NCBI GenBank assembly: GCA_002269645.1
Contig: NIVC01003688.1
Coordinates: 18,725-82,724, forward strand
Direction: 5' to 3'
DNA length: 64,000 bases
Source of the DNA: Macrostomum lignano
Taxonomy: Eukaryota
The position numbers were made by a program, and so were the translations under genes. Every line of letters begins with the position of its first letter. Positions within the stretch are counted from its first letter, which is position 1. Below are positions 4,867-50,100 of the stretch, in pieces. The notes beneath the pieces are model-generated. The model was not told where the DNA came from and ran no database searches. It saw only the letters and a program-made list of their open reading frames with translations.

Positions 4867-4903
<37 letters not shown>

Positions 4904-13885: not shown

Positions 13886-14451
13886 CTAAAGGCTTACAGT
13901 GACATGTATGATAGCAAGTAGTACGCTCGTATGTACGTAGCCGCAGTCAATTTTCATTTTCATTATATTATTGTCTATAAATAACACACTGTAGACAAAA
14001 GCAACACGCTTACGTATATATTGGCGCTTCAATTGTACTTTTAGAAGAAAATCGGCCACTTGAACATGTTGAGCTGTAGATTTTACAATCAACAGAAGCA
14101 ATTACGATTGCGAGGCCAAATCTTAAGGAACGAGTGTACGACATCTATCCCTACGAATTAGTTAGTCCACAAGTATCTCATTCTGGCCAAAACTGCCGTA
14201 TCTAGAGCAAGTCATTTCCTAATTTCCTCATTTGCTTCCCCAAAAAGTGCAATATCTCGCTGGCGTCGAAGGATGCAAATGTTGATAAGTTTCTGCTTCG
14301 GCAGCCAAGAAGATTTATGACTTATGTAGAGTAGCTGCTGTAAACATGCACCACAGTTAACAGCGCTTCTGCCATTAGCAATATTTTGTTACAGCCTGGT
14401 TTTAGTTTCTCTCTATTAAAGTAACAATTCGCCTCATATTTATTAGATTCT

Positions 14452-15385
14452 GCTTCCACTGAATATCGGGAAATAGGGTGACAGCTTCCACTGAATATTG
14501 GGGAATGGGGTGACAGCTTCCACTGAATATTGGGGAATGGGGTGACAGCTTCCACTGAATATTGGGGAATGGGGTGACAGCTTCCACTGAATATTGGGGA
14601 ATGGGGTGACAGCTTCCACTGAATATTGGAGAATGGGGTGACAGCTTCCACTGAATATTGGGGAATGGGGTGACAGCTTCCACTGAATATTGGAGAATGG
14701 GGTGACAGCTTCCACTGAATATTGGGGAATGGGGTGACAGCTTCCACTGAATATTGGAGAATGGGGTGACAGCTTCCACTGAATATTGGGGAATGGGGTG
14801 ACAGCTTCCACTGAATATTGGGGAATGGGGTGACAGCTTCCACTGAATATTGGGGAATGGGGTGACAGCTTCCACTGAATATTGGGGAATGGGGTGACAG
14901 CTTCCACTGAATATTGGGGAATGGGGTGACAGCTTCCACTGAATATTGGGGAATGGGATGACAGCTTCCACTGAATATTGGGGAATGGGATGACAGCTTC
15001 CACTGATTATTGGGGAATGGGGTGACAGCTTCCACTGATTATTGGGGAATGGGATGACAGCTTCCACTGAATATTGGGGAATGGGGTGACAGCTTCCACT
15101 GAATATTGGGGAATGGGGTGACAGCTTCCACTGAATATTGGGGAATGGGATGACAGCTTCCACTGAATATTGGGGAATGGGGTGACAGCTTCCACTGAAT
15201 ATTGGGGAATGGGATGACAGCTTCCACTGAATATTGGGGAATGGGATGACAGCTTCCACTGATTATTGGGGAATGGGTTGACAGCTTCCACTGATTATTG
15301 GGGAATGGGTTGACAGCTTCCACTGATTATTGGGGAATGGGGTGACAGCTTCCACTGAATATTGGGAAATGGAGTGACAGCTTCC
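14452..15385. repeat. 32-bp minisatellite GACAGCTTCCACTGAATATTGGGGAATGGGGT
   Basis: About 29 tandem copies; source of the spurious MEAVTPFPNIQW ORFs. Confidence 0.97.
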
Positions 15386-21393: not shown

Positions 21394-23801
21394 AATCGAC
21401 AGATCCACAGACAGACAGACACACTAATACAGATAGGTAAGGCAAATACTGCTCTGTAGATAGACAGATAGTGACACTAAGATAGATAGAAACACAGGCA
21501 AACCAAACAAGCAGTTAACCCAGACACCGGTGCAGATGGAGAATAGAAGTCAAAAAACGCTACGTAAGGCTTGACAAACCTGAAACGCCCGCACAAGTTT
21601 TGGCGCATTGGCGAGATTTCGGACAGTCAAACTGCAGATCAGCGGTCGCTCCAGCGGCTCTTTGAACACAAAATTATTGGACCACATTGACAAGAAGGCG
21701 TCGTGCAGATTGTGCTTGCACGTTATAAATAGATTGCGTAGCAGGGTGAGAACCTGAAAAGAGTCGGTTGATGCGTGCTTTTGATTTAGACTCAAGACCT
21801 CACATCTACTCAATACCGATTCAGATCTATTTTATCTAGATTCACATCTATCCTATCCACATGTATATTCAGATCTATCCCATCTAGATTCAGATCTATC
21901 CTATCTAGATTCAGATCTATCCCATCTACATGCAGATCTATCCTATCTAGATTCAGATCTATCCCATCTAGATGCAGATCTATCCTATCTAGATGCAGAT
22001 CTATCCTATCTAGATGCAGATCTATCCCATCTAGATTCAGATCTATCCTATCTAGATTTACATCTATCCTATCTAGATTTACACATCCATCCCAGCTAGA
22101 TTTACACATCTATCCCATCTAGATGCAGATCTATTCCATCTAGATTCACATCTATTCCATCTAGATTCAAATTCATTCCATCTAGATTCACATCTATTCC
22201 ATCTAGATTCACATCTATTCCATATAGATTCACATCTATTCCATCTATATTCACATATATCCCATGTAGATTCAGATCTATCCTACCTAGATTGAGATCC
22301 ATCCAATCTAGATTCGCATATATACTATCTAGAATCAGACTTAACCAATATAGATCAGATCTATTACATCTACATTCAAATTTAACGAATCGAGATTCAG
22401 ACCTATCCAATTAACAATTCTGAGCCCACCTGAATATCCTCTTTAACAAGTTGTAAATCGCGACGAAACAGCGCGTCGAGAGCGACAACTTCGTCGATGC
22501 AGTCCAGATATCGGCCCTCTTTAGTGCTCTGCTGCAGGCTGGCCATGCGGCACTGAATGTCGCTAATGACTGACATGGCCTGGTGGACCAGCTCGGCGCT
22601 GCGCAGCTGCTCCAGCACCTTTGGGGAAGGTGGGACAGACGGTTAATAATTGAAGACGGGAACTCCGCGATAACATTGAGAATGAGGATCTGCGATAGCT
22701 TCGGTTTAGAACGGAGGATTTGATGCCACAGTTGGCCCAGCAACTGAGGATCCGGGAGGCTGGCCCAGCAACTGAGGATCTGGAAGGCTGGCCCAGCAAC
22801 TGAGGATCTGGAAGGCTGGCCCAGCAACTGAGGATCTGGGAGGCTGGCCCAGAAACTGACACTCTGGGAGGCTGGCAGCCAAGCAACTGAGGATCTGGGA
22901 GGCTGGCAGCCAAGCAACTGACACTCTGGGGGGCTGGCCCAGCAACTGAGGATCTGGGAGGCTGGCCCAGCAACTGACACTTTGGGGTGCTGGCCCAGCA
23001 ACTGACACTCTGGGGGGGGGCTGGCCCAGCAACTGAGGATCTGGGAGGCTGGCCCAGCAACTGAGGATCTGGGAGGCTGGCCCAGCAACTGAGGATCTGG
23101 GAGGCTGGCAGCCAAGCAACTGAGGATCTGGGAGGCTGGCAGCCAAGCAACTGACACTCTGGGGGGCTGGCCCAGCAACTAAGGATCTGGGAGGCTGGCC
23201 AGCAACTGAGGATCTGGGAGGCTGGCCCAGCAACTGGGGATCTGGGAGGCTGGCCCAGAAACAGATTATCTGGGAGGCTGGCTTAGCAACTGGGGATCTG
23301 GGAGGGCGGCGGTGACCCAGCATCTGGGGATCTGGGAGAAAAAAATTTAAATCTAGCAATCCAATATTTTTATCACAGGTGGCTCACAAACTGAGGATCT
23401 TCAATGGTTATGGGAAGACACTATAAGAATCCTAAGCGTGGTTCAGGCCTTGGCTAAAGTTACTGATTTATCCTACACAGACCAAATAGAGAATCAGTGC
23501 CAATGATGCAACTAGCAGCTCGTAAGTCAGCTATCTTGTTCACCTTAGGATATTCCGCCAATCTCGCGTCCACCTCGGGCAGCACCTCGGACCTGGCCCG
23601 CTCGATAGCCTGGCCTAATCGGGTCTCAAGCTCGGCCACAGCCTGGGCCAGACTGGCCGACTCGCTGCGCGTGGCTTTGAAACAGTCAACAAGGCCAGCA
23701 TCGTTTTCCAGCATGTGCAACATGTCGGCCTTCAAATCGCCAATTGTCACCATCAACGATTTCATGTTGGCAATAATGGCCTCGTCTGATTGCTCGGACA
23801 T
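16606..23801 (-). CDS. ZW10: Centromere/kinetochore protein ZW10 (RZZ/NRZ complex), 7 exons, 798 aa
   Basis: Exons 23801-23544, 22618-22430, 21753-21580, 21083-20601, 19337-19030, 18132-17797, 17254-16606; all GT-AG with consistent phases, 2397 nt total. Motifs LITDCLAKTVP, FPTCRVSQSAIDLV, VPQLAALYYNNCHYLAH, WCDGKSPLADAFSDAEVRGIVKALFTNTDDRAAVLAKIN match the ZW10 family. Confidence 0.93.
17310..17745. repeat. Degenerate about 25-bp minisatellite (GGATTATGAGCGATTCTTT...) in ZW10 intron 6
   Basis: Direct inspection. Confidence 0.85.
18305..18985. repeat. About 40-bp minisatellite in ZW10 intron 5 with CCAAT and TGACTCA motifs
   Basis: Unit CAGCACACTCGCTGACCAATCAGAAAATCGATGACTCACT; about 16 copies. 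Confidence 0.92.
19400..20500. repeat. 39-41-bp minisatellite in ZW10 intron 4
   Basis: Unit GATCCCTGAAGGTGGGATGGGATCATGGAATTTGAGATGGG. Confidence 0.95.
21160..21420. repeat. (CAGA)n microsatellite in ZW10 intron 3
   Basis: Direct inspection. Confidence 0.93.
21818..22375. repeat. 21-bp minisatellite (TCTAGATTCAGATCTATCCCA) in ZW10 intron 2
   Basis: Direct inspection. Confidence 0.9.
22733..23337. repeat. About 28-bp minisatellite (GCTGGCCCAGCAACTGAGGATCTGGGAG) in ZW10 intron 1
   Basis: Direct inspection; source of the LLGQPPRSS ORFs. Confidence 0.93.
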
Positions 23802-24237: not shown

Positions 24238-24302
24238 GTGCAGAAGTTCAAAATCAAAAATAAAAAATCAAAATCTCTACCTAGAATGACATTGGTTATA
24301 AT

Positions 24303-24574
24303 CATACATGCGCAACCTCCAAAATTCGGTCGGCCATGCGACTTAGTTTTAACAAAAATGCGACGTAGTTTTTGGCCAAAAATGCAAAATTAACGCAACT
24401 GTGGGAAAAAGGGAAGGAGTAACTATGACTGTCTTATTAAGTCAAAATGCCTCGTCAGCTACATAGTACTACTACTTTGGTATTTTTTCGGGTGGGCATT
24501 TTTGCGACTTCCTTGGTTGGCCGCCAAATCGGTCGGCCGGATCGGCCGACTTGGCCGACTGTTGCGCATGTATG
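24303..24574. mobile_element. MITE, copy 1 (14-bp TIR CATACATGCGCAAC, 8-bp TSD GTTATAAT)
   Basis: Perfect TIRs; TSD at 24295-24302 and 24575-24582; internal similarity to copy 2. CA...TG ends with an 8-bp TSD fit hAT or P superfamilies. Confidence 0.9.
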
Positions 24575-25849
24575 GTTATAATGAATAATGATGATAATAA
24601 TTCTTCTAAGGTTCCTTTGTAAGGCCAACATTTTAGGCCTAGACTGATTTTTTCAAATAATAATAAAAGTTTGGCTATTTTAGTTTTATTAGGTCTATCA
24701 TTAGATCTATTTTTTAAATACAAGTATATTAGGTTGAGCCACAAGTTTATAGAATTTGAACAATTGGAAACTATAACAAATAGTCTCAAGAACAAACAGT
24801 TTATAGCAATATTATATAGTTACCATTTAAGGCCTTGACCCTCTCCTAACTTGCTTGCAATGCCTTGATACCCTCTTTCCAGAAGCTTGCAAGCCTTGAA
24901 TCTATCTATTTCTACATTGCCTGTTCTAAATGTTGCTTGTTGGCAAATTGCTATCTATTGCAAAAGCTCTAAAAGGACCTAAACGCATGGCAAGAGGTCT
25001 GATAAGCATGGTAGGTGGGGCAAAACATTGAAGCTTAGACTTGTGAGCTTGGCCTAGGTAAGTATTCTTTGTGAAGCTACACATTGTCAAAAAGGAGCTC
25101 CTTGTCATGGTACCCTAGGTAGAGTCTGACCAAGATAAAATTTTTGTTTTCAAGTGAGATTAAGCAAGAATTAAAAAAATTGAGATTGAGAATAAGTTGA
25201 TTGAGAATTGGAGATCTGGCTACAATTGTGAATTTGTATAGGAAGAATAGGCCTAGTACTTATGATAAGATATATAAAACTTAGCCTATATTATAAATAA
25301 GTAGATAATAATAATACAAAAGAAGACTCAAATGTGCCATCATAATAAAATATATGTAGCAATATGCAAAAGTAAGCCATTAACTCTGCCTGTGCCACTG
25401 TATGCCATTGCAAGATAAGATATATAAATAGGTTGAAGGTTGGTAATGGCCTACCAGGTGAGCCATAGGATCATGATTCATGGTATACCTATGCCAAAAC
25501 AAATCCTAGGCCTATCAAAATAGTAATTGTTACGCCATGTGCTGGAATTTTTTTTGCAAAAAGAAAAATTATTGAGATTATGTATTAAGATTAAGATTGT
25601 TTAATTTAAGATTTCTTATGTAATATTAATATATAGCAAATATATAGGCCTAGGCCTAAAAATGTAAGGCCTAAAGTTAAAAGAATTTATTATTAGTTAA
25701 ATCATTTTAATTCTTGTACTGCTACTGCTAGCCACTAGGGCGTAGTAATAATAAATACTAAATAGACATATGGACTAGGCCTATAGCCTGCCTATCTATA
25801 CAGGCCCAGGAGGCAGGAGCTACTGATTCAATTGTCATAAGGCGTATAC

Positions 25850-26133
25850 CATACATGCGCAACCCCCCTGATTTACACTGGCCATGCGACTTACTTTTTG
25901 ACAAAAAATGCGACTTAGGCCTACCTATGAAAGAAACTCTAAGAGCAGCATTAACGCAATTTTGGGTAAACGGCAGGAGTAACTATGACTGTCTTATAAG
26001 GGCTAAATGCCTCGTCATCTAATTAGTACTACGTCTGTATTCTTTGGGGTGGGCATTTTTGCGACTTACCCCTGGTCCACCACAATTTACGGTGGCCAGA
26101 TCGGCCAGGTCGGCCAGCAGTTGCGCATGTATG
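25850..26133. mobile_element. MITE, copy 2 (same TIR, 8-bp TSD GCGTATAC)
   Basis: TSD at 25842-25849 and 26134-26141; same internal blocks (GGCCATGCGACTTA, AACTATGACTGTCTTAT, GGGTGGGCATTTTTGCGACTT). Confidence 0.9.
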
Positions 26134-26859
26134 GCGTATACTATAGGGCCTAGTCTTACAAAACGAGTAGGCCTAGATCAAAAAATTCCAAAAATGCGTG
26201 TAGGGGCGAAAATCAAGCTTAGTGGCGCAAAAAATGCGTATAGGCGTATAGCGGCGAAAAATCAAGCTTAGGCCTTAGGAACTTAGGGCCATTATGGGCG
26301 CAAAAAAGTGTTTGGGGCGAAAAATCAAGTTTAGGGGCGCAAACTTTAGGTTTTTGGAGGCGCAATATGTTCTGTCAGGCTATTTTGTAGAGGGGGGGGC
26401 GAACCTGCGTATCCGCCCCTGCGTATGTAGGGCCTAGGTTAGGCTTACTTAAAAACCTGAAACCTTAAAAAACGTGAGTGATAAATTATTGAATGAAACA
26501 GGTGTGGTGAAGCAAACACGCAAACTTTTGCATTCAAATTTTTTTAGAATCTTCACAGATAATAACAGCTTCTAAAGAAGCTCAGTTGTATGCGCACAGT
26601 AATTAAAGTTTGTCACATGCTTATTCTTTCTATTTTGCTTTAATGTTGTTTTGTTTTATTAGCCCTGTGTTTAATTATTTTCAAAAAAACATTTTCATAC
26701 GGTCGCATTATTTACTACTACTACTGCAATTGGCAAGTACTGCGATATTTTGTGCCGAAGTTGTAACCAAATACATTTCCTATTTAATAGTGAGATAGGC
26801 CTTAATTTAAGCCTATTCTTGTAAACAAAAAGTCAAGTTTTACTGGGAGTGGCAGAACG

Positions 26860-29800
26860 ATGTCATATGCAAAGGGTCGCGTTTTGCACATCAGGAATTT
26901 GTCCAATCGAGCTGTGTAAGTTTTTGTCATGTCATTAAATTAATTGTTGTGCTATGGTAGCCCCTATGGGTTATTATTTAGTTAGGCCTATAATAAACCT
27001 ATAAGTAAGACATTCATTCTCTCTTATGTTGCTTTTTGCAGTGGCAATTGGGCCATTGGCATAAAAAGTCTTTTCACCTAGTTGGATAGGCCTACCAGTC
27101 ATTTTGGTGACAAGTCATTTTGGTGACAGACAATTCGGTGACAAATAGTCATTTTGGTGACAAAGAGTGGTCGTTTCAGTGACAAAGAGTAGACGTTTCA
27201 GTGACAAATAAAGTTTGTTTCATAATATTAGTTTGTAGTTATTTTGTATATCTATAATATACATATACTATATGTATAATTTATAATCTTTGTTAATATC
27301 CATGTATAAGTGTCTAGCTTTTATACAGACCCTTAAAGAGTGGATGTTTCAATGACAAATGAAAGACTTGGTAAGAGATCTTTTTATCAAGTTAGTTTTT
27401 AGCTTGTACAAGCTAGTTTTCAATTATTTTGTGTTTATTTAACAAAGCCCAAAAGGAGCAGATAAGTGGTACATATACATAAAGCACTTGCGATGAAATT
27501 ATAAATACTATAAAGGCTCAAAAGCTCAAAAGGAATGGTATAATGATGGATCCAAATATTCAGATTCGGATTCCGAATCCAAAGAAAAGTCTCACTTTTT
27601 TAGAAATCCGAATGTTTCAGATTTGGAAATTTTATTTTCCGAATTTCCTAATGTGCTTCCAAATATGAAAAAAAAATTCAAAACAAAATTATGCTAATGT
27701 AAAAGAAATACAACTTTTTGAAAAGAAAGTCCATTAAAAAATAGGAATGCAAAAATTAGTATAATATCTTTCATTTTTACAATTGTCTGTTTTTGCAGTA
27801 ACATATATTATAAAAAAGTGTTATTAAGTAAAGTTAATTAACTTCGTAACCTTTGAGGCATTCAACCTAAAGTTGCAGAAACATTTAATCGCAGTAATCA
27901 TTGTTTAAGTGTAATCATTACATTTTTCAAAATGCAAATGCAATGGACTTTATGTGCACTAAATTATACACAGTAACTTAGTTATCATATTAAATTGCAC
28001 AAATATAGCAAGAACGGAGGCAGGACACTAAATTTGACTTTGAGCCTTTACTGGCCAATCGCGCGCTTGCATAGCTCACCGCTTACAAGGCACACTCTAA
28101 AGCATAGCCAGTAACAGTTCAAGCCATGATTCAGCATTTATTGGACTCACCATCAAGCTAAGGCAATGAAATTTAACTGATATAAAGTTACGAATATAAA
28201 GTATTAAGCAAAACAAAAATATACGAGTATTAATACATTGCAATGCAATTACTTTGCTTTACTTAACACCCGCCTCAAGTTGGCACCAATTTAAATTACA
28301 AAATTAAGGTGTACTACACAAACGTAATATCAGTTAGTATTAGTAATTGGAATTAGTTAGATTAGATATATAAGTTTTGAGTTTAAGTCTAGTTTAATTC
28401 AATTCAGATACTAGATAGATATAGTATAAGCCTGAGATTAGATTGAATCTTATCAGTAAATTAATGTATAGCGCTAATACGATTACTAATTAGATGACAA
28501 GGCATTTTTGTCACTAAAAGGTGTCATATTTACTCTCGCTGTGTACCTTTTACTTTTGTCTACATTCAAAAACACATTCAGATATTTGGATTCGGATTCA
28601 GAATTTGTTTGTACATTCGGATTTGGTTTTGGCAACTCTCAAAAATCTACATTTGGTCCATCAATAGAATGTTATATGTACACCACACTCAGAAAGGTGT
28701 ACATTATAGTGGAAAATTCTGGCACATATAAAAAAAATGTGCACAAAGCAGCGTATACAGTGTACAACAAAGGCTTAGCAGAAGTTTTTAGTGCACAGTG
28801 GCATATAGCAAAACCTGATCAGAAAAATTTAGCTTACAATGAATCACTTAAATGTATAATCTGCATATGCAGTGCATAAAATATGCTTTAAGATCAAAGC
28901 ATATTCTGCTTAAAGGAGCAGGATATGAACATAAAGCACTTGCATTGAACTTATATTGTAAAGAAACAAAGCTCAAAAAGAGCAGTACATATACATAAAC
29001 TGATAAAGCACTTGCATTGAAATTATAAATACTATAAAGGCACATAGCTCAAAAGGAGCGGTATATGTACATAAAGTGCTTGCATTGAAATTATAAAGTT
29101 CAGAAGTTTAGAAAGCACTTAGTTAGCTAGATTGTCTATTATCCACTGGCACCTGAAACAGCAGCAGGGGCACGCACAGTCTGCCGCAAGCCCACAGCAA
29201 ATGCATGGCAGTCATATTGCTGTCCTGATACTTGCCCTAGAGCTCAAATATTTGGCCTTGCATGTCTCTGTATTGACGCCTCTGGATGCATTTTAGTGCC
29301 CTCTGTGAGAGCATTTGTGCCTGCAAAGGTGCAGCACTTGAATGAGCAGGTAAAATTGGATATTGCTGCATTGAGCTCAGTGTTGAAGGTGACAGCTTAG
29401 CCAATTCCCATATAATCCTTGACATCTCAATGAATCCCCATGATGTCAAAATGTCCTAATGTTATAGAATCTACTAATATAGAACATTCTTAAAGTTGAT
29501 AAATGCATTATGATAGCTTTTCTCTCATTAGTAATTTTAGTCATAATTTAATTCAACATTTATAATAACTTGTTTTAATGAAGATAAGACTATACATAAT
29601 TTGTGCTAATTAAAAAATAGTTTAACTAAATAAATTTATTTTATAACCTTATTGCTTTCAAATATCAAATTACAGTTTCCAAAAAATTTCCCCTTAATTT
29701 TTGGATTTTGTCATATTTATATTATATATATTGCTACATTTCATACATAATATGAGCCATAAGCCCACAATCCCTAACACTCTTGACTCTACAGACTCAA

Positions 29801-32179
29801 ACTTCTCAGTTTGAGAAGCACTTTCCTTCTAAAGCTTTCGCAAATCTTAATACACCCCTTTATCTATGAGCCACAACATCAATACTCAACTCTTGACTTA
29901 GCAAATGATCAATTAGGTGCATCAAATGGAGTGTTAGGATTTGGGTTATAAATTGCTTTATACTAGATGTCAAAGTTCTGTTACTTTGTGTTTAAATTTC
30001 AAACTTTTCTTATTGTAATTTACATATTTGAAATGATATTTGGCTCAATTTATTTGATATCATTAATCCGCAGGCAAGATGATCTCCGTCGTGCCTTCTC
30101 CAAGTTTGGCTACATCACGGATATAACCATTCCATTGGACTACTACACCGGCCGAATGAAAGGGTATGCATTTGTAGAATATCCTTTTTCTATAAGTTTA
30201 ATTCATTTTTTAGTAATGTACTCGTTTCAGTTCAATAATTTTGCCTGGCTGGTTTACAATATACGCATTTTTATATCTTGTAGGCTCTGCATTGCAGTTG
30301 TCTGTTTTGTTGTAAATTAATAACCTAATCAACTTTAAATATCTGCAGGAAACTATTCTGAAAACCAACCAACCAATCAGTCAATCAGTCCTATCACTAA
30401 GACCTATTCAATCCTGTCTCTGGACTAAAGCCAATGCACACTAACCAGCAACCGGTGTTTCAACACTGAGTTCGACTGACAGCCAGACTGTCAACTGTCA
30501 GCTTGCTTGAAGTTGCAGACACGGCCCTAGCCAAAGCCCTAGTCCTAAAAGCAACTGCTGTCATCCAAGGCCAACAACAGCCAAGCAATTGTGTCTAATC
30601 AGTCAGTCAGTCAGCCAATTTAAATTTCTAAGCGAGGCACTCGTTACCTGTTTTTTGTAAAAGATTTCACTAGCTGGATTTCTAATCTGAGTAGCAAACT
30701 GATAATTTCCCCAGATCGATACATAAAATATCTGTTGGGAAATCCATTGGTTGCTACAGCTGTCTTTGAAATTTAAGCTAGTGAAATTATTTTTTTCTTA
30801 TCTTATTTATACTTCGACGCCCAATCTGCACTACTTACTGATCGGCAGTAGGTAAGCTAGGAAGTTTTTCGTTTTATTTTCTGTGTCAACCTAAAAAAAC
30901 TTGAAAAATTCCTTAACTCGATAAATCTTCTCGTCGTGGGCTTAACCGCGATTCGATTGAATTTAAAAACAATCGTTTACGTTCGACCGCACGAGCGACG
31001 CCCGCGAAGCTATCCGCCGGATGGACCGAACCCAGCTGCTGGGCCGGACTATTGAAATTGAGATTGCCCGCGGCTACAGGCGCACCCCTGCAGAGATGAT
31101 GCGCATACAGAAGGAACGCGACCATATGGATCATCGGCGCGAACGGGACGACCGGGACAGGGACCGTGGTCGCGACCGGGACAGGGACCGAGACCGTAGG
31201 GATCGTAGGGACAGGAGGTGAGAGTTGAGAGTCTTGTCGATTAGAACAGAGGTCGAGAGAGAAATGAAAAGTTAATGCGAAACTTGGGAATGGAGTGGTT
31301 CAGAAGCATAAATCTGTTTATACGAGTATGATAGAAAGTGGTATAATTACAGGTCGAAATTGGTAGAAATACAGGCAGTAATTCGTAAAATTGTAGGTAG
31401 AAATTACTAAAATTACAGGTAAAAGAGGTAAAAATACAGATAGAAAATGGTAGACTAACATGTAAAAAATGGTAGACTAACAGGTAGCAAATGGCAGACT
31501 AACATGTAGAAAATGGTAGACTAACATGTAGAAAATGGTAGACTAACATGTAGAAAATGGTAGACTAACAGGTAGCAAATGGTAGAATTACAGGGAAATG
31601 TGGTAGAATTACAGGTGGGAGAGGTAGAACTACGGGTAGGAAGTGGTAGAAGGAATGTAATTCCCCTTCCAGCACAGCCGCCGACGCACCCCACCCCCCC
31701 CCCTACCTGCGCAGCCGCTCGCCGCGTTCCCGCGTCGCAGCTCCGGGCGCGGCCGTCGATCGTCTCGCTCGCCAGCTGGCAGCGGCAGCCGAGGCGGCGG
31801 AGGCGATGACCGCGAATCTCGGCATCATCGCGGCAGCGACCGTGGCGACCGTGACCGCAGCGACCGCGGCGACCGTGACCGCAGCGACCGCGGCGACCGT
31901 GACCGCAGCGACCGAGACCGCAGCAGACGACGTGACGCCACCGACGAGAACGGAGGCGGCGAAGATAATAGGCGTCGCCGAGCTTCATCGGGCTCTCCGC
32001 CGCCTCAGCATCGCTCGCCATCGCCGATGGCACCGCTGCCGCCAGCTTCAGGCCGCGACAACTACGACGACGAGGACAATGATCGCCGTGGCGCCGCTTC
32101 GATGTCGCGCTCGCCGTCGCACTCTCGTTCGCCGTCTCATTCTCGTTCGCGCTCGCGCTCTCGCTCCGGTTCGCGCTGA
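26860..32179 (+). CDS. SRSF10: SR splicing factor of the SRSF10/SRSF12 type (one RRM plus RD/RS region), 4 exons, 299 aa
   Basis: Exons 26860-26915, 30074-30178, 30981-31217, 31678-32179 (900 nt). MSYAKGRVLHIRNLSNRAV-QDDLRRAFSKFGYITDITIPLDYYTGRMKGYAFVE-FDRTSDAREAIRRMDRTQLLGRTIEIEIARGYRRTPAEM aligns without gaps with the SRSF10 RRM (PLDFYT..RGFAYVQFEDVRDAEDA..LD....GR.IEI.FA.GDRKTP..M); ends SRSPSHSRSRSRSRSGSR. Confidence 0.88.
30179..30980 (+). other. U12-type (minor spliceosome) AT-AC intron
   Basis: 5' end ATATCCTTT at 30179; 3' end TTTAC at 30980; TTCCTTAAC at 30909-30917 and GCTTAAC at about 30940-30946; removal restores GA|G (Glu) and an ungapped RRM. Confidence 0.88.
31395..31630. repeat. 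Degenerate about 22-bp minisatellite (AAAATGGTAGACTAACATGTAG) in SR-gene intron 3
   Basis: Direct inspection. Confidence 0.75.
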
Positions 32180-32309: not shown

Positions 32310-32850
32310 GTCAGACTGTCAGAGTGAGATTCCAGACGGTCAGTGTGAGATTCCAAACTGTCAGGGTGAGATTCCAAACCGTCAGGGTGAGATTCCAGGC
32401 TGTCAGTGTGAGATTCCAAACTGTCAGGCTGAGATTCCAGACTGTTATCTGTTGAAGTGAGATTCCAAACTGTCAGGGTGAGATTCCAAACTGTTATCTG
32501 TTGAAGTGAGATTCCAAACTGTCAGGGTGAGATTCCAAACTGTCAGGGTGAGATTCCAAACTGTCAGGGTGAGATTCCAAACTGTCAGGGTGAGATTCCA
32601 AACTGTCAGGGTGAGATTCCAAACTGTCAGGGTGAGATTCCAAACTGTCAGGGTGAGATTCCAAACTGTCAGGGTGAGATTCCAAACTGTCAGAGTGAGA
32701 TTCCAAACTGTCAGGGTGAGATTCCAAACTTTCAGGGTGAGATTCCAGACTGTCAGGCTGAGATTCCAGACTGTTAAAGTGAGAATCCAGATTGTCAGAG
32801 TGAGATTCCACTGTCAGATTGAGATTCCACTGTCAGATTGAGATTCCGAA
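32310..32850. repeat. 21-bp minisatellite GTGAGATTCCAAACTGTCAGG just 3' of the SR-gene stop codon
   Basis: Direct inspection; source of the VRVRFQT and SHPDSLE ORFs. Confidence 0.95.
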
Positions 32851-33720
32851 CTGTCTAGAGTAAGATTTCGAACTATCGGGCTTAAGTTTTGAGTCTTAAA
32901 TTTAAAAAACCTTAATACTAATTGTTAAGCCAGAGCCCTGTGTGAACATTGTTTAATAAATACATCAAACTGCTGGCAATGTACTGATTCATTACCTGCA
33001 GACATTCTGCACTAACTAAGCCAACTGGAATGGACATTTTTGTTGTAAAACTTCAAACACCGACTCTGCGTATAGCAACCGAAACGCCACTAATCCGCCG
33101 GTTTTTACCTGCAAGCACTCATTTTGTTCTGTTTTTGTAACTAATTAATAATAGTTCTGTTTGTCATTTTTTGTATCCAAAAACTAGCAAAACGTAAATA
33201 TTGGCCAATATGCGTGTGTCTATAGCTACTATTATTTATTTAGCTGTTGTCATGGCAACAATGAATACCCGCCGGCCTAAGCTTATCGTATGTTGGTCTT
33301 GCGTTGCACAGTTTCACCGGTTTTTATTCACATAATAATAATTAATAATCATATAGTAAGTGCAACCTAGCAGCTAATTATTTATACACTGTGTTCTAAC
33401 GTTCGCTTTCCTTACTCTAGTGTTTTAATCTGATAATTAATGCTCTACTATAAAAATAAACCATCTGTTTTAAAGGAAGAACCAAAAAAGTAATATCTCA
33501 AACACAGTTGTTGGAAATTTTTTAGTAATATTTGATTTTTTTGTTACTTTACTTTAATTAGTGTATATGCGATATATGCGTATTGGTATAAAATATCATT
33601 CGAGGTAAAGTTGTTACGGATTGATACAAAATTCGCAAATTTTACTGCTTAATAAGATATTAGCATAATTTAATATGTCCCTAATCAGATGAGCTGATGC
33701 CAGCTGATTTTTACATATTA

Positions 33721-35173: not shown

Positions 35174-38100
35174 TTAATTACCCCGACTATTAAGCGACTC
35201 CCTCAATTCAAAATCGACAGCGTCGCCCGAAGCCGACTGGCTGCCGGGAATCGACGACCGCCGGCTGTCCAGAGTGGCCGGGTAGCCAACCGACGAGCCG
35301 GCGTCCCAGCGCCAGTCCAGCTCCCAATCGCTGCTGTCGTCTCCGCTGTCTCCACCACCGTCGTAGCGACGCTGCCGATGCTTTGTTTTCCACTCGCTGC
35401 CGATGTCAATGCCGACATCCGAGGCGGTCAGCGAGGCGTGGACATGCCGCAGCAGCAGGCCGGACATGCCGGCGCCGATGCCGCTTCTCTTCGACATCGA
35501 CGGCCGCCGGCGCCGCTGCCAAGTCCACGTCGTCGATCGATCGTCGGGGACAGTGGATCCGCCGTCGCCGCTGAGCGCTTCGGCCAAGTCGGCGTCGAGC
35601 TCCTGGTGCTTCACTTCGCTGGCTAGGCGGTCGCGCATGCCGCAGGCGAGCCGGTCTCTGCGGTCCTCAGACTGGTCCGAGTCGAAGCTGAACACCGAGG
35701 ATGAGGCGGCGAAGTCCTCGTCGGCAAAACTTGGCGCCCTGGCCAGCAGTTCGGGACGGATCTTCACGATTAGGACGCAGATGTTGCCGCTGGAGCCGTG
35801 CGACTGTGGTTGAGTGGAAGAAGGCAGTTAATGTATGATGAAGGATTCTGGTCACAGATTGAGCAGATGTCAAAGTAATCTCCTGGATAGCTGGATCAGC
35901 AGGACGCTACAGTCGGTTTTCTTAAAAATGAGATGAAGGTCGGTGGGGTAATGTGCTCTTTTGGAGGAGGCCGATTTTTTCGACCGAATTAGTCTATGGC
36001 AAAACCTGCTGATCCCTGAGCACGCGCCCGGGTGAGTTGCGCATGCAAGCACACGCTCACACAAGGTGAACACGTTTCTAGAAAAACTTTAGGAAACAGG
36101 TTTTCCAAAAAATACACTAGGATTGTAGCCTGGTAGTTACAGCGTCGGACTCACGACTTGAAGGTCAGGGGTTCGATTCCCGATCTCACTGGAACAATTT
36201 GTGTCCTTGAGCAAGACGCTTAACTCTGCATTTGCTTCAGTTCACCCAGCTGTAAAATGGGTGCCAGCATTAGCTGGGGCAATTGAGGGTGTGTGTGGTG
36301 GGGGGGGGGGGTTTCACAAACACGAAATTTCATCACAACATCGAAAATTCAAATAGCAACCATTTTCACAAGGTCGAAATTTCACAACGTAGAAAACTAC
36401 TGCATAGTTCTTGTTATAATAAGTTTTCGGTGTTGTGAAATTTCGACCTTGTGAAGGCACCCCTGTGTGGCGACCCCCCAGCAGGGACTGGACTGAACAG
36501 CCGTACGCAGCCTTCAGATGCGCCGTGCAATAGCGCATCGGTTGCACATCTGGCCCTATTGGGGCAGGTGTACTAAAAAAATTTCAGCACAAAGTTTTTT
36601 ATAGCTCTATTGATATTCATACTGCTTTTCGTTTGTAAAATTTGGATTCTATGTTAATTTTATATCCCACCTACATGTACTGTGCCTAGCATGATAAAAA
36701 TGGCAGGGCTTGACTCATTGAAAAATATTTTATCATGCTTAGCTTATTGACTGTAACAAAAGTGTAACAAAATGATAATATTGATTCATAGAACCAAAAC
36801 GTAGGATATAAGATTAACATAGAATCATAATTTTCTAATGGAAAAGCTTTATAAATATCTATAGAGCAATAAGAAAGGCAAGTAATACCAAAAGACAAAC
36901 GTTGGGTCTCCCTCCTATCAAAAGCAATAACAATTTTTGTGCTGAAATTTTAGTCCTTGTGTGTACAGCGGCCAGCAGTGTGCACTCTCCGTGGCATTGG
37001 GGTTGGCACCTTGGAGCTAGCGTGTGCGCTCTTAGCTAGATTTTAAACGCACCTGCGCCAAGTCCACCAGCCGTTTTGCCGCAGCCACTGGATGTGCGAC
37101 CTTCAGCACTTCGGCTGCCACCACTTCGTGTCCGACATGCGACCACAGGCCGCGGTTCGCTAGGACGAGGGCGTCGTCCCACTCTGTGAGGTTGAGCTGA
37201 GTCACCTGCGGATCCGGCACCACTACCGGATGAAGGGAGGACCAGCCCAGCATCCTGGTGCACCTGTATGAGGAAGTATTGTGTGTATAATGTACATGTT
37301 TGTGACCAATTAGTGACTTCACAAACTTCTGTAGTTTACTCGTTGGTGAAACTAATAGTTGGTGAACTCACTATAGTTGGTGAACTCACTATAGTTGGTG
37401 AATTCACTGTAGTTAGTGAACTCACTATAGTTGGTGAACTCAATATAGTTAGTGAACTCACTGTAGTTGGTGAACTCACTGTATTTGGTGAACTCACTGT
37501 AGTTGGTGAACTCACTGTATTTGGTGAACTCACTATAGTTGGTGAACTCACTATAGTTGGTGAACTCACTGTAGTTGGTGAACTCACTGTAGTTGGTGAA
37601 CTCACTGTATTTGGTGAACTCACTGTAGTTGGTGAACTCACTGTATTTGGTGAACTCACTATAGTTGGTGAACTCACTATAGTTGGTGAACTCACTGTAG
37701 TTGGTGAAGTCACTGTATTTGGTGAACTCACTATAGTTGGTGAACTCACTATAGTTGGTGAACTCACTGTAGTTGGTGAACTCACTGTATTTGGTGAACT
37801 CACTATAGTTGGTGAACTCACTATAGTTGGTGAACTCACTATAGTTGGTGAACTCACTGTAGTTGGTGAACTCACTGTAGTTGGTGAACTCACTGTAGTT
37901 GGTGAACTCACTGTAGTTGGTGAACTCACTATAGTTGGTGAACTCACTAATAGTTGGTGAACTCACTATATTTGGTGAACTATCTGTAGTTGGTGAACTC
38001 ACTAATAGTTGGTGAACGCTACATAGTTGGTGAACTCACCTGCACTGGCCATTCACGCGGCCATCGTCAGTGACGACACCGCCAGCTTTTGTGACTCTGG

Positions 38101-41100: not shown

Positions 41101-44100
41101 GTTAGACAGGGAATTATTGGTTAGACAGGGAATCACCGGTTTCAAACATGGAATCCTCGATTAGACAGGGAATCACCGGTTTCAAACATGGAATCACTGG
41201 TTAGACAGGGAATTATCGGTTAGACAGGGAATCACCGGTTTCAAACATGGAATCCTCGATTAGACAGGGAATCACCGGTTAGACAGGGAATCACCGGTTA
41301 GACAGGGAATCACCGGTTAGACAGAGAATCACCGGTTAGACAGGGAATCACCGGTCAGACACGGGAATCTCCGATTAGACATGGGAATCACCGGTCAGAC
41401 ACAGGTCCAACCACAGTTTCCCACCTCACGGAAGCCAGGTCCTGCATAGACATGCCCATCTGCTGGTTGCAGGAGAGGTCCAAGAAGCTGAGCCTGGATT
41501 CCATCAGATTGCGCACAGATCCGCTCAGTGTTGAATTGCAGCCAACGTCAAGAGTTCGCAGTCTGGGCGAGTCGCTGAGGTCCGGCAGTCGCTGCAGGCA
41601 GTTGGAGTGAGCCCTGATCGTAACCAGGCGTTCGAGACGAGACAAAGTCGATGGCAGCGTCTTCAGCTGGTTGCCGGATATGTTCAATTCGCGAAGCTCG
41701 CAAAACTGAAGCATTGTTCTTTGATGATGGGGTACGTTTGAATGCTTTTATTTCGTGGCAAGTACATGCACTGTGAGCGAAGTTAATAAAAAATTCTGAC
41801 AAGAACAAGAACAGAACTTGCTTTGGGTGCTTCTTTTTATGAGACATTACGCGCTCAAAGTTCATCGGGGCAATTCTTTTTAACACCCTTCTAATTCCCA
41901 TCAAGTAAAATTAAAATTTTCTCTCAAACATCAGTCTTATTCCCCTCAAATACTATTTTAATTCGCCTCAAACTCTATTCTAATTCCTCTCCAACACCAT
42001 TCTAATTCCTCTCAAACACCAATTTTAATTCACCTCACATACAATTCTTATTCTCCTCAAGTACCAGTTTAATTCCCTTCAAATACCATTCCAATTGCCT
42101 TCATATACCATTCTAATTCCCCTCAAACAACATTCTAATTCCCTTCAAATACCATTCTAATTCCCCTCAAACAACATTCTAATTCCCTTCAAATACCATT
42201 CTAATTCCCCTCAAACAACATTCTAATTCCCTTCAAATACCATTCTAATTCCCCTCAAAAAACATTCTAATTCCCTTCAAATACCATTCTAATTCCCCTC
42301 AAAAACATTCTAATTCCCCTCAAATGAGACCATTATAATTCTCCTCAAACACCATTCTAATTCCCCTCAAACAGCGTTCTAATTCCCCTTAAATACCATT
42401 ATAATTCTCCTCAAACAGCATTCTAATTCCCCTCAAACAACATTCTAATTCCCCTCAAATCATTATAATTCTCCTCAAACAGCATTCTAATTCCCCTCAA
42501 CTTACCATTCTAATTGCCCTCAAACACGATTCTCATTCTCCCTCAAACAGCAATATAATCCCCCTCAAACACCATTCTAATTCCCCTCAAACACCCTTCT
42601 AATTCCCCTCAAATACCATTCTAATTCCCCTCAAACACAATTCGAATCCCGCGGCACACAATGTACTCAAAAGAAGCCCAGACTCACTCGTCGTTAATCT
42701 CCGTGAGCCGGTTAAACGCTAGCAGCAGAGTCCGCAGGCTGCTCCCAAAGTTCTCCGCAAGGAAGCTGACATCTGCATCGCTGAATTGGTTGAACGAAGC
42801 CGTCAGGACTTGAAGTCGATTGCCGGAATTCCTAAGCGGCAGTTTTGGCAACTCAACGAGCTGATTGTTGGCTAAATTCAACTCAACTAGAGCTGGCGTC
42901 AGGTGGAACAGAGCCGCTGGTAGCCTAGTTAACTGGTTGCTATGGAGACAGAGCTCTAGCAGCTCAGTCAGACCGTTGGCAGCCTCGGCTGGCGCAGCTG
43001 GCAGCTCGGCTATTCGGTTTCGCTCCAGACGGAGGCTCTGCAACTTGACGCAGCGCCAGATGTCGGCTGGCAGTCGGCGAATTTCATTGCCGCCGGCGTG
43101 CAGTCGGAGGAGGCTGGCTCGGCCAGACGGCCACAAACAGTCGGGCAGGCTGTCAAGGCGGTTGTCACTGACGTCGAGGCATTCGAGACGCTTCGGTGGC
43201 GGCGATATTTTTAGGCTTTGCAGCTCTGCGTTGGCGGGGATCGAGACATTGGCTTGGGGAGGTTCTTTGGAAATTGTCGATCAGCTTTGGGGAAATCCAG
43301 TTTCTCTCTAGTAACCTTGAGGAAAGGCAGTCTCTGTTTAGTGACCTTGAGGTAAGCGAATTCCTTTCCAGTGACCTTAAGGAAGGCAGTATCTCTTTAG
43401 TGACTTTGATATGAATAAAAGCCTATTTTTGTCCAGTGACCTTGAGAAAAGCAAGTTTCTCTTCAGTAACCTTGCGGAAAGCGAGTCTCTCTCCAGTGAC
43501 CTTAAGGAAAGACAGTCTCTCTTTAGTGACCTTGAGGAAAGCGAGTCTCTCGAGTAATCTTGCGGAAAGCGAGTCTCTCGATCCAGTGACATTGAAGAGA
43601 GCCAGTTTCTCTCCAGTGACCTTGAGGAAAGCCAGTTTCTCTCCAGTGACCTTGAGGAAAGCCAGTTTCTCTCCAGTGACCTTGAGGAAAGCCAGTTTCT
43701 CTCAAGTGACCTTGAGGAGAGCCAGTTTTTCTCCAGTGACCTTGGGGATAGCCAGTTTCTCTCCAGTGACCTTGAGGAAAGCCAGTTTCTCTCCAGTGAC
43801 CTTGAGGAAAGCCAGTTTCTCTCCAGTGACCTTGAAGAAAGGCAGTCTCTCTCCAGTGACCTTAAGGGAAAGCCTGTTTTTCTCCAATAATTGGGGAAAG
43901 CGAGTCTCTCTCCAGTGACCTTGAGGAAAGCCAGTCTCTTTCTTTCTAAGTGTATTGAATCGTAAAATGTAAGCAACAATAGTGTAATTAAGTATGGCTT
44001 ATAAAAAATACGAGCGTAGTAGCGTTTTAGTCAAAATATATCATTGAGTTAAAATAGTCTATAAAGGATAAAATATAGTTCATAGCTCGCACTAAACAGA

Positions 44101-47100
44101 AAGTACTCAAAACTCACTATTTTCAACCAATAACAGAGTTCTCAGTGCCGTTCCGTTGACGAAAATGTCTGCAAGCCTGTTCCTGTCACAGGACAGGAAT
44201 TCCAGATGGGACAGCGGCTGCAAATCCAGCGTCTCGATCTGGTAAATATAGCGGACGGGGGAGAGGTCGGCTCAAAAATCTAAGCTGACTTTTGAAAATT
44301 CTTTTGAACTGTTTTCTAAAAAAATCTAAAAATTCTTGTCTCTGTATCCAGTTAAATTTAGCACACTAATATATGAGTACTTTCTTGTGAATTCCTGAAT
44401 TTTCATCAACGAAGAAGAGCTTCGACAAAGAAAGTTAATAATATCTATTTTACTATATTTACGCGCTCGCACATTATTTTTCACTTCAAAAAGGTTTTGT
44501 TCCTTTGAATAGTTTGCGAAAAGCAAATAAGTTTCTGTCCTTACAGCTAGGCCAAAAGAAATTTCGTATTTTTAACTGACAGCAATGTACTGACGTAGCA
44601 GATGTAGTTTTATAAAACTTTTTTTGGCCACAAAATCTAGACTAACCAAATCTAATCTAACCCTATCTAATCTGACACACTCTAATCTGACACAATCTAA
44701 TTTAACTGAATCTAATTTCACCCAATCTAATCGAATCAAGTCTAATCTCTCCCTCCAATCTAATCTAACCAAATCTACTATCACCCAATCTAATCTCACC
44801 CAATCTAGTCTAATCAAATCGAATCTAACCAAATCGAATCTAACCGAATATAATCTCACCCAATCTAATCTAACCATATCTAATCAAATCAATTTTAATC
44901 TCTCCCTCCAATCTAATCTAACCAAATCTACTATCACCCAATCTAATATCACCCAATCTAGTCGAATCAAATCTAATCTAACCAAATCTAATCTCACCCA
45001 ATCTAATCTCACCCAATCTATTCTAATCAAATCTAATCTAACCAAATCTTATCTAACCGAATCTAATCTCAACATAATCTAATATAATCCAATTTAATAT
45101 AACAAAATCTAATATAGCCAAATCTAATGTACCGACACCCAATCTAATCTAACATTATCTAATCTACCATGATCTAATCTAACCCCTGTCTAATAAAATC
45201 TCGAATCCCAACAACTAAAGCTCACCAGATTATCCCTGAGATCCAGGTACACAAGGTGCGTGAGTCCGGCCAGTCCCAGACTGATCCCACTGTCAATCGC
45301 AACCAGCCGATTAAAACGCAAATTAATTCGTTTAATCCCTCCAGCGTCCAGGCGTTGAGCCAGAGCATCCGGGATGCTACTGAGCTGGTTGCCAGGCAAA
45401 ATGACGTCACTGTTGCTAGGCAGACAGGCTAATACGGGAGGCAATTCTTCGAACCGATTAAAAGCGATCAGCAGTACGGACAGTTGAGCGAGTGACGTCA
45501 TCGAGTCTGGCAGCTCCGTGAGTCGATTGTTGTACAGGTAGAGGCTCCGAAGTCTGAGCGGTTCAGTGGGAGTTTTATGCACCTAGATAAAGATTTTATT
45601 GCTTGCACTTTGGCAGTGTTTGACTCTGCTGACACTTATAGTTTGACACTTACTGACACTTATAGTTTGACACTGCTGACACTTATAGTTTGACAATGCT
45701 GACACTTATAGTTTGACACTGCTGACACTTATAGTTTGACACTTACTGACACTTATAGTTTGACAATGCTGACAGTTATAGTTTGACACTTACTGACACT
45801 TATAGTTTGACACTGCTGACACTTATAGTTTGACACTGCTGACACTTATAGTTTGACACTGCTGACACTTATAGTTTGACACTGCTGACACTTATAGTTT
45901 GACACTTACTCACACTTATAGTTTGACAATGCTGACACTTATAGTTTGACACTTACTGACACTTATAGTTTGACTCTGCTGACAGTTATAGTTTGACACT
46001 TACTGACACTTATAGTTTGACACTGCTGACACTTATAGTTTGACAATGCTGACACTTATAGTTTGACACTTACTGACACTTATAGTTTGACACTGCTGAC
46101 ACTTATAGTTTGACACTGCTGACACTTATAGTTTGACACTTACTGACACTTATAGTTTGACACTGCTGATACTTATAGTTTGACAATGCTGACACTTATA
46201 GTTTGACACTTACTGACACTTATAGTTTGACACTTACTGACACTTATAGTTTGACACTTACTGACACTTATAGTTTGACACTTACTGACACTTATAGTTT
46301 GACACTGCTGACACTTATAGTTTGACACTTACTGACACTTATAGTTTGACACTTACTGACACTTATGGTTTGACACTGCTGACACTTATAGTTTGACACT
46401 TACTGACACTTATAGTTTGACACTTACTGACACTTATAGTTTGACACTGCTGACACTTATAGTTTGACACTGCTGACACTTATAGTTTGACACTGCTGAC
46501 ACTTATAGTTTGACACTGCTGACACTTATAGTTTGACACTGCTGACACTTATAGTTTGACACTGCTGACACTTATAGTTTGACACTTACTGACACTTATA
46601 GTTTGACACTGCTGACACTTATAGTTTGACACTTACTGACACTTATAGTTTGACACTGCTGACACTTATAGTTTGACACTTACTGACACTTATAGTTTGA
46701 CACTTACTGACACTTATAGTTTGACACTGCTGACACTTATAGTTTGACACTGCTGACACTTATAGTTTGACACTGCTGACACTTATAGTTTGACACTGCT
46801 GACACTTATAGTTTGACACTGCTGAAGCTATAAATGTCCTTCGATACAACTGAAAACCTAGTTCGACACAATCTGACCTTGAGTGAAGAGCTACTGACTT
46901 TAATCTTGAAATATCTTGAAATAATTAGGATAATTTTATAGTCGCTTACTTTATCAGATTGGAAATCTCGTTAGGCAGCGCCGAAATCTGATTGGCTGCT
47001 ATATTTAGCTCAGTTAAAGAGCGCAGCCGGCACAGGCACGCGGGCAAAGTAGTTAGAAAGTTCTCGGACAAATCCAGACTAGTTAAATTTCGGAATCTGA

Positions 47101-50100
47101 AAAATAGATAAGGTACTTATAAAGCAGAGTTAGGGCCAGGGATAGTAAGTCAGGATTTTGTAAAATGTGACTCACATTTGAATGTCCTCCAGGTGGCCAG
47201 ACAATCTGTCTCCCCGCTGTGAAGCTGAAGAATCTGGCGTCATTTTTGATGACTGTAAACAGTTGCGCCTGAGATTGAGGCTCAGTAGGCGGTCGCCCAG
47301 GTGAAACAGGGACTCCGGCATCAGATTCAGCTGCCGATTGGACAGGTCCGCCTTGTCCACAGGCTGGCTGATAGCCTGGGGTGGGGAAGTTTTTGTTGCT
47401 AAGTAAATCGCTGAGGCTGTTAACTGTGGAGAGCTGTTTATAACCCACTGCGGTTATTCTTGAGGGCTGTTTATTACCCACTGTGGTTATTCTTGGGGGC
47501 TGTTTATTACCCACTGCGGTTATTCTTGGGGGCTGTTTATTACCCACTGCGGTTATTCTGGGGGGCTGTTTATTACCCACTGCGGTTATTCTTGGGGGCT
47601 GTTTATTACCCACTGCGGTTATTCTTGGGGGCTGTTTATCACCCACTGCGGTTATTCTGGGGGGCTGTTTATCACCCACTGCGGTTATTCTGAGGGGCTG
47701 TTTATTACCCACTGTGGTTATTCTTGGGGGCTGTTCATCACCCACTGCGGTTATTCTTGGGGGCTGTTTATTACCCACTGCGGTTATTCTGGGGGGCTGT
47801 TTATTACCCACTGCGGTTATTCTTGGGGGCTGTTTATTACCCACTGCGGTTATTCTGGGGGCTGTTTATTACCCACTGCGGTTATTCTGGGGGGCTGTTT
47901 ATTACCCACTGCGGATATTAGGGGGCTGTTTATAACCCACTGCGGTTATTCTTGGGGGCTGTTTATCACCCACTGCGGTTATTCTTGGGGGCTGTTTATC
48001 ACCCACTGCGGTTATTCTGGGGGGCTGTTTATCACCCACTGCGGTTATTCTTGGGGGCTGTTTATTACCCACTGCGGTTATTCTGAGGGGCTGTTTATCA
48101 CCCACTGCGGTTATTCTTGGGGGCTGTTTATTACCCACTGCGGTTATTCTGAGGGGCTGTTTATTACCCACTGTGGTTATTCTTGGGGGCTGTTCATCAC
48201 CCACTGCGGTTATTCTTGGGGGCTGTTTATTACCCACTGCGGTTATTCTGGGGGGCTGTTTATTACCCACTGCGGTTATTCTTGGGGGCTGTTTATTACC
48301 CACTGCGGTTATTCTGAGGGGCTGTTTATCACCCACTGCGGTTATTCTTGGGGGCTGTTTATTACCCACTGCGGTTATTCTTGGGGGCTGTTTATTACCC
48401 ACTGCGGTTATTCTGGGGGGCTGTTTATTACCCACTGCGGATATTAGGGGGCTGTTTATAACCCACTGCGGTTATTCTTGGGGGCTGTTTATCACCCACT
48501 GCGGTTATTCTTGGGGGCTGTTTATCACCCACTGCGGTTATTCTGGGGGGCTGTTTATTACCCACTGCGGTTATTCTTGGGGGCTGTTTATTACCCACTG
48601 CGGTTATTCTGGGGGGTTGTTTATTACCCACTGCGGATATTAGGGGGCTGTTTATAACCCACTGCGGTTATTCTTGGGGGCTGTTTATTACTCACTGCGG
48701 TTATTCTGGGGGGTTGTTTATTACCCACTGCGGATATTAGGGGGCTGTTTATTACCCACTGCGGTTATTCTGGGGGGTTGTTTATTACCCACTGCGGTTA
48801 TTCTGGGGGCCGTTTATTACCCACTGCGGTTATTCTTGGGGGCTGTTTATTACTCACTGCGGTTATTCTGAGGGGCTGTTTATTACCCACTGCGGTTATT
48901 CTGGGGGCTGTTTATTACCCACTGCGGCTATTCTGGGGGGCTGTTTATCACCCACTGCGGTTATTCTTGGGGGCTGTTTATCACCCACTGCGGTTATTCT
49001 TGGGGGCTGTTTATCACCCACTGCGGTTATTCTTGGGGGCTGTTTATCACCCACTGCGGTTATTCTTGGGGGCTGTTTATCACCCACTGCGGTTATTCTT
49101 GGGGGCTGTTTATCACCCACTGCGGTTATTCTTGGGGGCTGTTTATCACCCACTGCGGTTATTCTTGGGGCTGTTTATCACCCACTGTGGTTATTCTGGG
49201 GGGGGCTGTTTATTACCCACTGTGGTTATTCTTGGGGGCTGTTTATTACCCACTGTGGTTATTCTTGGGGGCTGTTTATCACCCACTGCGGTTATTCTTG
49301 GGGGCTGTTTATCACCCACTGCGGTTATTCTTGGGGGCTGTTTATCACCCACTGCGGTTATTCTTGGGGGCTGTTTATCACCCACTGCGGTTATTCTTGG
49401 GGCTGTTTATCACCCACTGTGGTTATTCTGGGGGGGGGCTGTTTATTACCCACTGTGGTTATTCTGGGGGGGGGGGCTGTTTATTACCCACTGTGGTTAT
49501 TCTTGGGGGCTGTTTATTACCCACTGTGGTTATTCTTGGGGGCTGTTTATCACCCACTGCGGTTATTCTTGGGGGCTGTTTATCACCCACTGCGGTTATT
49601 CTTGGGGGCTGTTTATCACCCACTGCGGTTATTCTTGGGGGCTGTTTATCACCCACTGCGGTTATTCTTGGGGCTGTTTATTACCCACTGTGGTTATTCT
49701 GGGGGGGCTGTTTATTACCCACTGTGGTTATTCTGGGGGGGGGGGCTGTTTATTACCCACTGCGGTTATTCTGGGGGGCTGTTTATTACCCACTGTGGTT
49801 ATTCTTGGGGGCTGTTTATCACCCACTGCGGTTATTCTTGGGGGCTGTTTATCACCCACTGCGGTTATTCTTGGGGCTGTTTATTACCCACTGTGGTTAT
49901 TCTGGGGGGGGGCTGTTTATTACCCACTGTGGTTATTCTGGGGGGGGGGCTGTTTATTACCCACTGCGGTTATTCTGGGGGGCTGTTTATTACCCACTGC
50001 GGTTATTCTGGGGGGCTGTTTATTACCCACTGCGGTTATTCTGGGGGGGGCTGTTTATTACCCACTACGGTTATTCTGGGGGGCTGTTTATTACCCACTG

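Follow-up and report, generated by a model that had tools for sequence, protein, structure and literature searches.

Evidence for a U12-dependent AT-AC intron in the RRM of an SRSF10/SRSF12-family gene of the flatworm Macrostomum lignano

In vertebrates, SRSF10 carries an AT-AC intron of the U12 type that runs from exon 2 to exon 4, and nested within it are an intron of the U2 type, a poison exon (exon 3) that bears a poly(A) site, and an enhancer rich in GA (PMC7244321). Minor introns have also been reported in Schistosoma (PMC10639083), and a literature search found no published statement linking M. lignano with the minor spliceosome. Here, we analysed a 64-kb stretch of DNA (64,000 nt, hereafter the window) in which an SRSF10-like gene, possibly from a flatworm, had been predicted from the bare sequence to be interrupted by an intron of this kind. 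The gene resembles vertebrate SRSF10 (Meinke et al. 2020, PMC7244321) in that an AT-AC intron starts from exon 2 and productive mRNA requires, or here would require, the minor spliceosome, the two genes being compared at the level of exons. The protein context is also alike, AYVQ/FEDV in SRSF10-type proteins and AFVE/FDRT in the window gene (a slash marks a splice boundary throughout). In the vertebrate gene the nested elements, with an SRSF10-dependent enhancer and a competing major 5′ site, make up an autoregulatory module; no internal exon/enhancer block of that style is conserved between the introns of two M. lignano paralogs, which have the 5′ splice site alone in common.

The four-exon model, on the + strand from 26860 to 32179 (Table 1), encodes 299 aa, with the RRM at the N terminus and a tail rich in RD/RS. 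Exon 1 was not detected by motif scans and was found only by means of a database protein, UniProt A0A1I8JAK0 (242 aa), which is 99% identical over the aligned part in an exhaustive HMMER search. This near-identical protein belongs to Macrostomum lignano, so the suspected flatworm origin proved right. When the AT-AC intron is spliced out, the product contains one RRM at its N terminus, in which RNP2 and RNP1 are both present (Pfam RRM_1, 70 bits, E = 1.6e-19, positions 2-69 of 70), and the end of exon 3 together with exon 4 supplies a C-terminal Arg/Ser-rich domain, RD- and RS-rich, with the terminus ...SRSPSHSRSRSRSRSGSR. Two acceptors 5 nt apart are available to exon 4: CACAG/ at 31677 preserves the frame of the RS domain and CAG/ at 31672 breaks it. 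Between the window and the UniProt protein there is an apparent one-C difference in a C-run near 31725-31735, which may stem from a variant allele or copy or from a mistake in the assembly. Two minisatellites accompany this part of the locus, a 22-nt unit in 14.7 copies within intron 3 (31332-31651) and a 21-nt unit in 26 copies directly beyond the 3′ end of the gene (32315-32874).

Table 1. Features of the window gene and of its AT-AC intron, followed by the corresponding introns in related loci; distances run from the branch site to the 3′ end of the intron
Feature	Position	Strand	Description
Exon 1	26860-26915	+	ATG to GCTGT; encodes MSYAKGRVLHIRNLSNRA(V) with the RNP2 motif; matches residues 1-19 of the database M. 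lignano protein at 100%
Exon 1 donor	directly 3′ of 26915	+	GTAAGT
Intron 1	26916-30073	+	ordinary GT-AG, GTAAGT...CCGCAG
Exon 2	30074-30178	+	(V)QDDLRRAFSKFGYITDITIPLDYYTGRMKGYAFV + GA; terminates within RNP1
AT-AC intron	30179-30980	+	probable U12 type, 802 nt, phase 2
5′ splice site of U12 type	30179-30187	+	ATATCCTTT; fits consensus /[AG]TATCCTTT; RTATCCTT occurs nowhere else in the window (both strands)
U12 3′-end look-alike inside intron	30794-30812	+	TTTCTTATC; AC 11 nt 3′ of its branch A, then TTCGACG
U12 branch-site box	30909-30917	+	TTCCTTAAC; perfect match to TCCTTAAC; branch A at 30916
Predicted hairpin 1	30933-30952	+	7-bp stem; its loop, GCUUAA, holds the second candidate for a branch box, G-CTTAAC (30940-30946), at 35 nt from the 3′ end
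Predicted hairpin 2	30954-30975	+	CGAUUG/CAAUCG (here the slash separates the strands), 6-bp stem, 10-nt loop
3′ terminal AC	30979-30980	+	exon sequence GTTCGA next
Exon 3	30981-31217	+	(E)FDRTSDAREAIRRMDRTQLLGRTIEIEIARGYRRTPAEMM..., then RD-rich stretch; donor AG/GTGAGA
Intron 3	31218-31677	+	GT-AG; contains the 22-nt minisatellite; acceptor CACAG/ at 31677
Exon 4	31678-32179	+	RS/RD-rich C-terminal domain; TGA stop 32177-32179
Intron, M. lignano window gene			802 nt; best branch box TTCCTTAAC; 64 nt
Intron, M. lignano paralog			1682 / 1753 nt; best branch box GTCTTTAAC; 52 nt
Intron, Schistosoma mansoni			535 nt; best branch box GTCCTTAAC; 12 nt
Intron, Echinostoma caproni	L007 2934-3477		544 nt; best branch box TTCCTTGAC; 13 nt; read through in the database model
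Intron, Taenia solium	L004 1783-1868		86 nt; best branch box TTCCATTAC; 11 nt; read through in the database model
Intron, Priapulus caudatus			1859 nt; best branch box GTCCTTGAC; 13 nt
Intron, Rhopilema esculentum			1597 nt; best branch box TGTCTTAAC; 10 nt

The closest named relative of the full-length model is an SR factor of S. mansoni, with 56% identity, followed in order by SRSF10/FUSIP1 of molluscs, Priapulus and Rhopilema, by SRSF12 of Taenia and Peromyscus, and by the plant proteins SCL30/33; in the alignment, a motif RG.R.TP..M located after the RRM is common to the window protein and its SRSF10/12 relatives. Judged by these closest named relatives and by the motif, the gene would encode an SR protein of the SRSF10/SRSF12 (FUSIP1) subfamily, to which the plant SCL proteins are also akin, and the SRSF10-like label that it had initially received is in line with this placement. 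Matches in the PDB were generic RRMs only and thus uninformative on the family. One of the PDB entries, 2cqc, is titled 'Arginine/serine-rich splicing factor 10', but by older gene names this is presumably TRA2B and not SRSF10. A word-indexed protein search with a 90-aa RRM query gave 0 matches despite the presence of the 99%-identical protein in the collection, which the full-length query matched and the exhaustive HMMER search recovered; negatives of the word-indexed search with a short query are hence unreliable.

The boundaries of the intron fall within this RRM. Exon 2 ends with ...GCATTTGTAGA (AAA GGG TAT GCA TTT GTA GA) at 30178, which gives the boundary GTAGA/ATATCCTTTT, and the intron ends with ...CAATCGTTTAC (CGTTTAC) at 30980, after which exon 3 opens with G TTC GAC CGC ACG AGC GAC GCC at 30981. 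Joining 30178 to 30981 yields in frame ...GRMKGYAFVE/FDRTSDAREAIRRM..., that is, ...DYYTGRMKGYAFVE/FDRTSDAREAIRRMDRTQLLGRTIEIEIARGYRRTPAEMM, and places the interruption directly after the RNP1 core (GYAFV-E/F). The original prediction had placed the intron within 30170-30990, with its start after GTA GA, TTCCTTAAC at 30909 and the end at TTTAC/GTTCGAC, all of which were reproduced; its expectation that splicing would give an RRM of the FVE-FDRTSDA type was borne out by the in-frame join and the complete RRM_1 domain, and the two motifs that it took as defining a U12 intron, the 5′ splice site and the branch box, are both perfect. By shuffling, about 1.5 chance occurrences of RTATCCTTT would be expected on both strands of the window. 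ATATCCTT occurs once on the two strands, on the exact base and strand at which the RRM homology breaks, and neither the window nor the paralog loci contain a further RTATCCTT beyond the 5′ splice sites of the AT-AC introns. The exact TTCCTTAAC is likewise present in a single copy in 128 kb (both strands of the window), and this copy falls in the final 75 nt of that intron. We conclude with high confidence that 30179-30980 is a U12-dependent AT-AC intron that splits, in phase 2, the RRM of the putative M. lignano ortholog of SRSF10/SRSF12. Rare AT-AC introns of the U2 type do exist, and removal by the major spliceosome would account for the same ends, but the full U12 consensus ATATCCTTT, the perfect U12 branch box and the absence of a pyrimidine tract (pyrimidine fraction of 0.51 over the last 37 nt examined, with an A-rich run) make this scarcely credible. 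A Rfam gathering scan of the 64-kb window was empty for minor snRNA genes, a result that says little at 64 kb.

Could a conventional intron rebuild the domain? AG dinucleotides are absent from 30865-30994, including all 116 nt 5′ of exon 3, and a GT-AG intron therefore cannot rebuild RNP1. In-frame GT/GC-AG combinations (24 of 24) use acceptors inside exon 3 (30995, 31009, 31035), and each of them deletes RNP1 or inserts junk, in accordance with the earlier claim that no GT-AG alternative restores the RRM. The RRM_1 score, 70 bits with the AT-AC junction, is 36 bits with the best GT-AG junction, which is that of the database model: A0A1I8JAK0 joins 30163 to 30996 (donor AGG/GTATGC at 30164, acceptor CACGAG/ at 30995) and is devoid of the 10 residues YAFVEFDRTS, RNP1 included. 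We found no transcript or transcript-based protein of the window gene, and the sole database protein uses this GT-AG pair. If the true mRNA had exactly this UniProt structure, with GTATGC serving as a passable U2 donor, the protein would lose RNP1 and half of its RRM score, the acceptor would lie in coding sequence that is GC-rich and has no pyrimidine tract, and the 10 residues and AT-AC ends would nonetheless be kept in the paralog and in every ortholog; we regard this as very improbable. A0A1I8JAK0 is mis-spliced via a GT-AG pair located within coding sequence.

The AT-AC reading is reinforced by related loci. An M. lignano paralog, PAA65139.1, represented by two 97%-identical copies (L001, L002), has 60% identity in the aligned region and shows the junction GTG CA/ATATCCTTTT ... 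TTTCAC/T TAC AAT with codon and phase unchanged; the CDS annotated for it crosses this junction. The GenBank annotation of the paralog derives from mapped transcripts only (BLAT of a de novo transcriptome, STAR/StringTie/TACO and TransDecoder; PMC5730564). Since this annotation is transcript-only, M. lignano probably removes an AT-AC intron at this place. Orthologous loci were compared in five species, S. mansoni, E. caproni, T. solium, Priapulus caudatus and Rhopilema esculentum. All present xxA/ATATCCTTTT...AC/GTTYGA in the same codon and in phase 2, like the window gene, and ATATCCTTTT is identical in 7 of 7 related loci. Because the intron is shared by flatworms, Priapulus and Rhopilema, it dates back at least to the ancestor of cnidarians and bilaterians. 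The SRSF10 minor intron thus predates the cnidarian-bilaterian split and persists in both free-living and parasitic flatworms. These results agree with two further suppositions of the original prediction: that the intron is ancient, the same AT-AC intron being found in the paralog, in three parasitic flatworms, in a priapulid and in a cnidarian, and that M. lignano has a working minor spliceosome, to which the conservation of the intron and the AT-AC junction in the transcript-only annotation of the paralog point indirectly.

The assemblies of M. lignano are highly redundant (PMC5730564), which raises the question of whether the window copy is, in a partly polyploid genome, a decaying duplicate or pseudogene that inherited its intron signals and lost expression. 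The 1-nt difference in the C-run of exon 4 from the UniProt model, which requires a shifted acceptor, would fit such decay. However, the four exons are open, the splice signals intact and the RRM complete, and the acceptor at 31677 solves the exon 4 difference in frame, so we hold a pseudogene to be quite improbable.

Why has this intron been missed in database models? The proteins of Taenia solium (P0199) and Echinostoma caproni (P0173) show 'EYPF' after RNP1, which is GA-ATATCCTTT translated; that is, both models read through the AT-AC intron and acquire junk insertions in the RRM. The models of M. lignano, Taenia and Echinostoma are wrong because the predictors disregarded AT-AC ends. This is what had been anticipated of predictors limited to GT-AG, and it affects three models: A0A1I8JAK0, the Taenia solium 'SRSF12' and the Echinostoma caproni protein. 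For annotation, the value of the present analysis lies in the correction of the model of an SRSF10/12 gene.

The position of the branch site is less straightforward. In U12-type introns, the branch site lies 10-20 nt from the 3′ splice site, with an optimum at 11-13 nt (PMC8199999). The window gene has no box at such a distance: its perfect box, already described as unusually far from the AC, is 64 nt away when counted from the branch A, and the alternative GCTTAAC proposed about 35 nt upstream corresponds to GGGCTTAAC, a 6/9 match located 35 nt from the 3′ end. In the orthologs of the five species, the distance from branch box to 3′ end is 10-13 nt, as against 64 and 52 nt in the two M. lignano paralogs, which have predicted hairpins in the spacer. 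This distant box in both paralogs is a small anomaly to the U12 distance rule and the sole unusual point of the intron. The paralog introns share only the 5′ splice site, and the long spacing is consequently either a legacy of an old duplication or the result of two separate origins, which speaks for its being tolerated or used.

One way to explain these distances is that the intron, still of the U12 type, branches at a proximal degenerate site, either GCUUAAC at -35 or an unrecognisable site nearer the AC, and that the distal box is unused or serves an unproductive pathway only. GGGCTTAAC lies within the region that intronIC scans for branch sites, GCUUAAC is displayed in the loop of predicted hairpin 1, and the known distance constraint prefers the nearer site (PMC8199999). 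Against this, 35 nt is likewise more than is usual, no similar proximal motif occurs in the last 50 nt of the paralog intron, and a perfect 9-mer, expected well below once per 128 kb, is unlikely to persist unused; a proximal branch is possible but doubtful. We favour the use of the distal box, with a spacer that is predicted to be structured. When the spacers, fixed in advance as the sequence from the branch box to the 3′ end, were folded and compared with 200 shuffles, the window spacer gave -14.8 kcal/mol (z -2.28, 8 of 200 shuffles as good) and the paralog spacer -12.7 kcal/mol (z -3.43, 0 of 200). The hairpins of both spacers were retained when folded in larger context; the excised hairpins on their own reach a z of about -3.5, a post hoc value that is to be discounted. 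With the helices collapsed, the effective distance shrinks to some 22-24 nt for the window gene and 17-19 nt for the paralog, values that come from two sequences without covariation and, for the paralog, from a box (7/9 matches) that alone is not significant.

In yeast, distant branch points of U2-type introns are bridged by RNA structure. The likeness is that a hairpin located in the interval from branch point to 3′ splice site would cut the effective distance; the difference is that the yeast mechanism belongs to the major spliceosome, whereas in M. lignano the structure is predicted only. We know of no described case of a structure-bridged distant branch point for U12-type introns. We tentatively raise the idea that the minor spliceosome of Macrostomum relies on a branch site that is 50-65 nt away from the 3′ splice site, by means of a relaxed distance rule or of spacer hairpins. 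If true, this would be a U12-type counterpart of the structure-bridged distant branch points. It would also have a practical consequence: intronIC scans for branch sites from -55 to -5 (PMC7367187) and, with this limit, would miss the perfect box of the window gene, so standard U12 classifiers with such a scan would under-call minor introns in the Macrostomum lineage.

A model of how the intron may be removed can be outlined. U11 would pair with ATATCCTTT and U12 with the branch box, which in both paralogs would be the distal one, brought by the spacer hairpins to the effective distances given above. U4atac/U6atac.U5 would then perform catalysis and ligate 30178 to 30981. The output of functional splicing factor would depend on how active the minor spliceosome is, as with any essential U12 intron.

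The look-alike 3′ end inside the intron (Table 1) is followed, 37 nt further, by a good U2 donor, CAGTAG/GTAAGC at 30849/30850, whose use would lead to an in-frame stop. The look-alike and the GTAAGC, spanning 30794-30855, may be a decoy, a poison or unproductive element, or the product of chance. We considered 30794-30812 as a duplication of the 3′ splice region, and the comparison detected no duplication. Upstream of exon 1, a dispersed repeat is present in two copies (24290-24590 and 25830-26140) with the common strings CATGCGCAACC...GGCCATGCGACTTA...AAAATGCGAC...GGAGTAACTATGACTGTCTTAT. The window is also rich in minisatellite arrays, for example at 500-1900, 14300-15260, 37270-38000 and 47080-50230. 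Other likely genes lie on the - strand: a rhodopsin-type GPCR-like ORF in two frames at 4751-6060, split near 5176-5209; a leucine-rich-repeat exon set at 42684-45582; and, at 23460-23801, a coiled-coil-like ORF of 113 aa that has its start turned towards the SRSF10-like gene.
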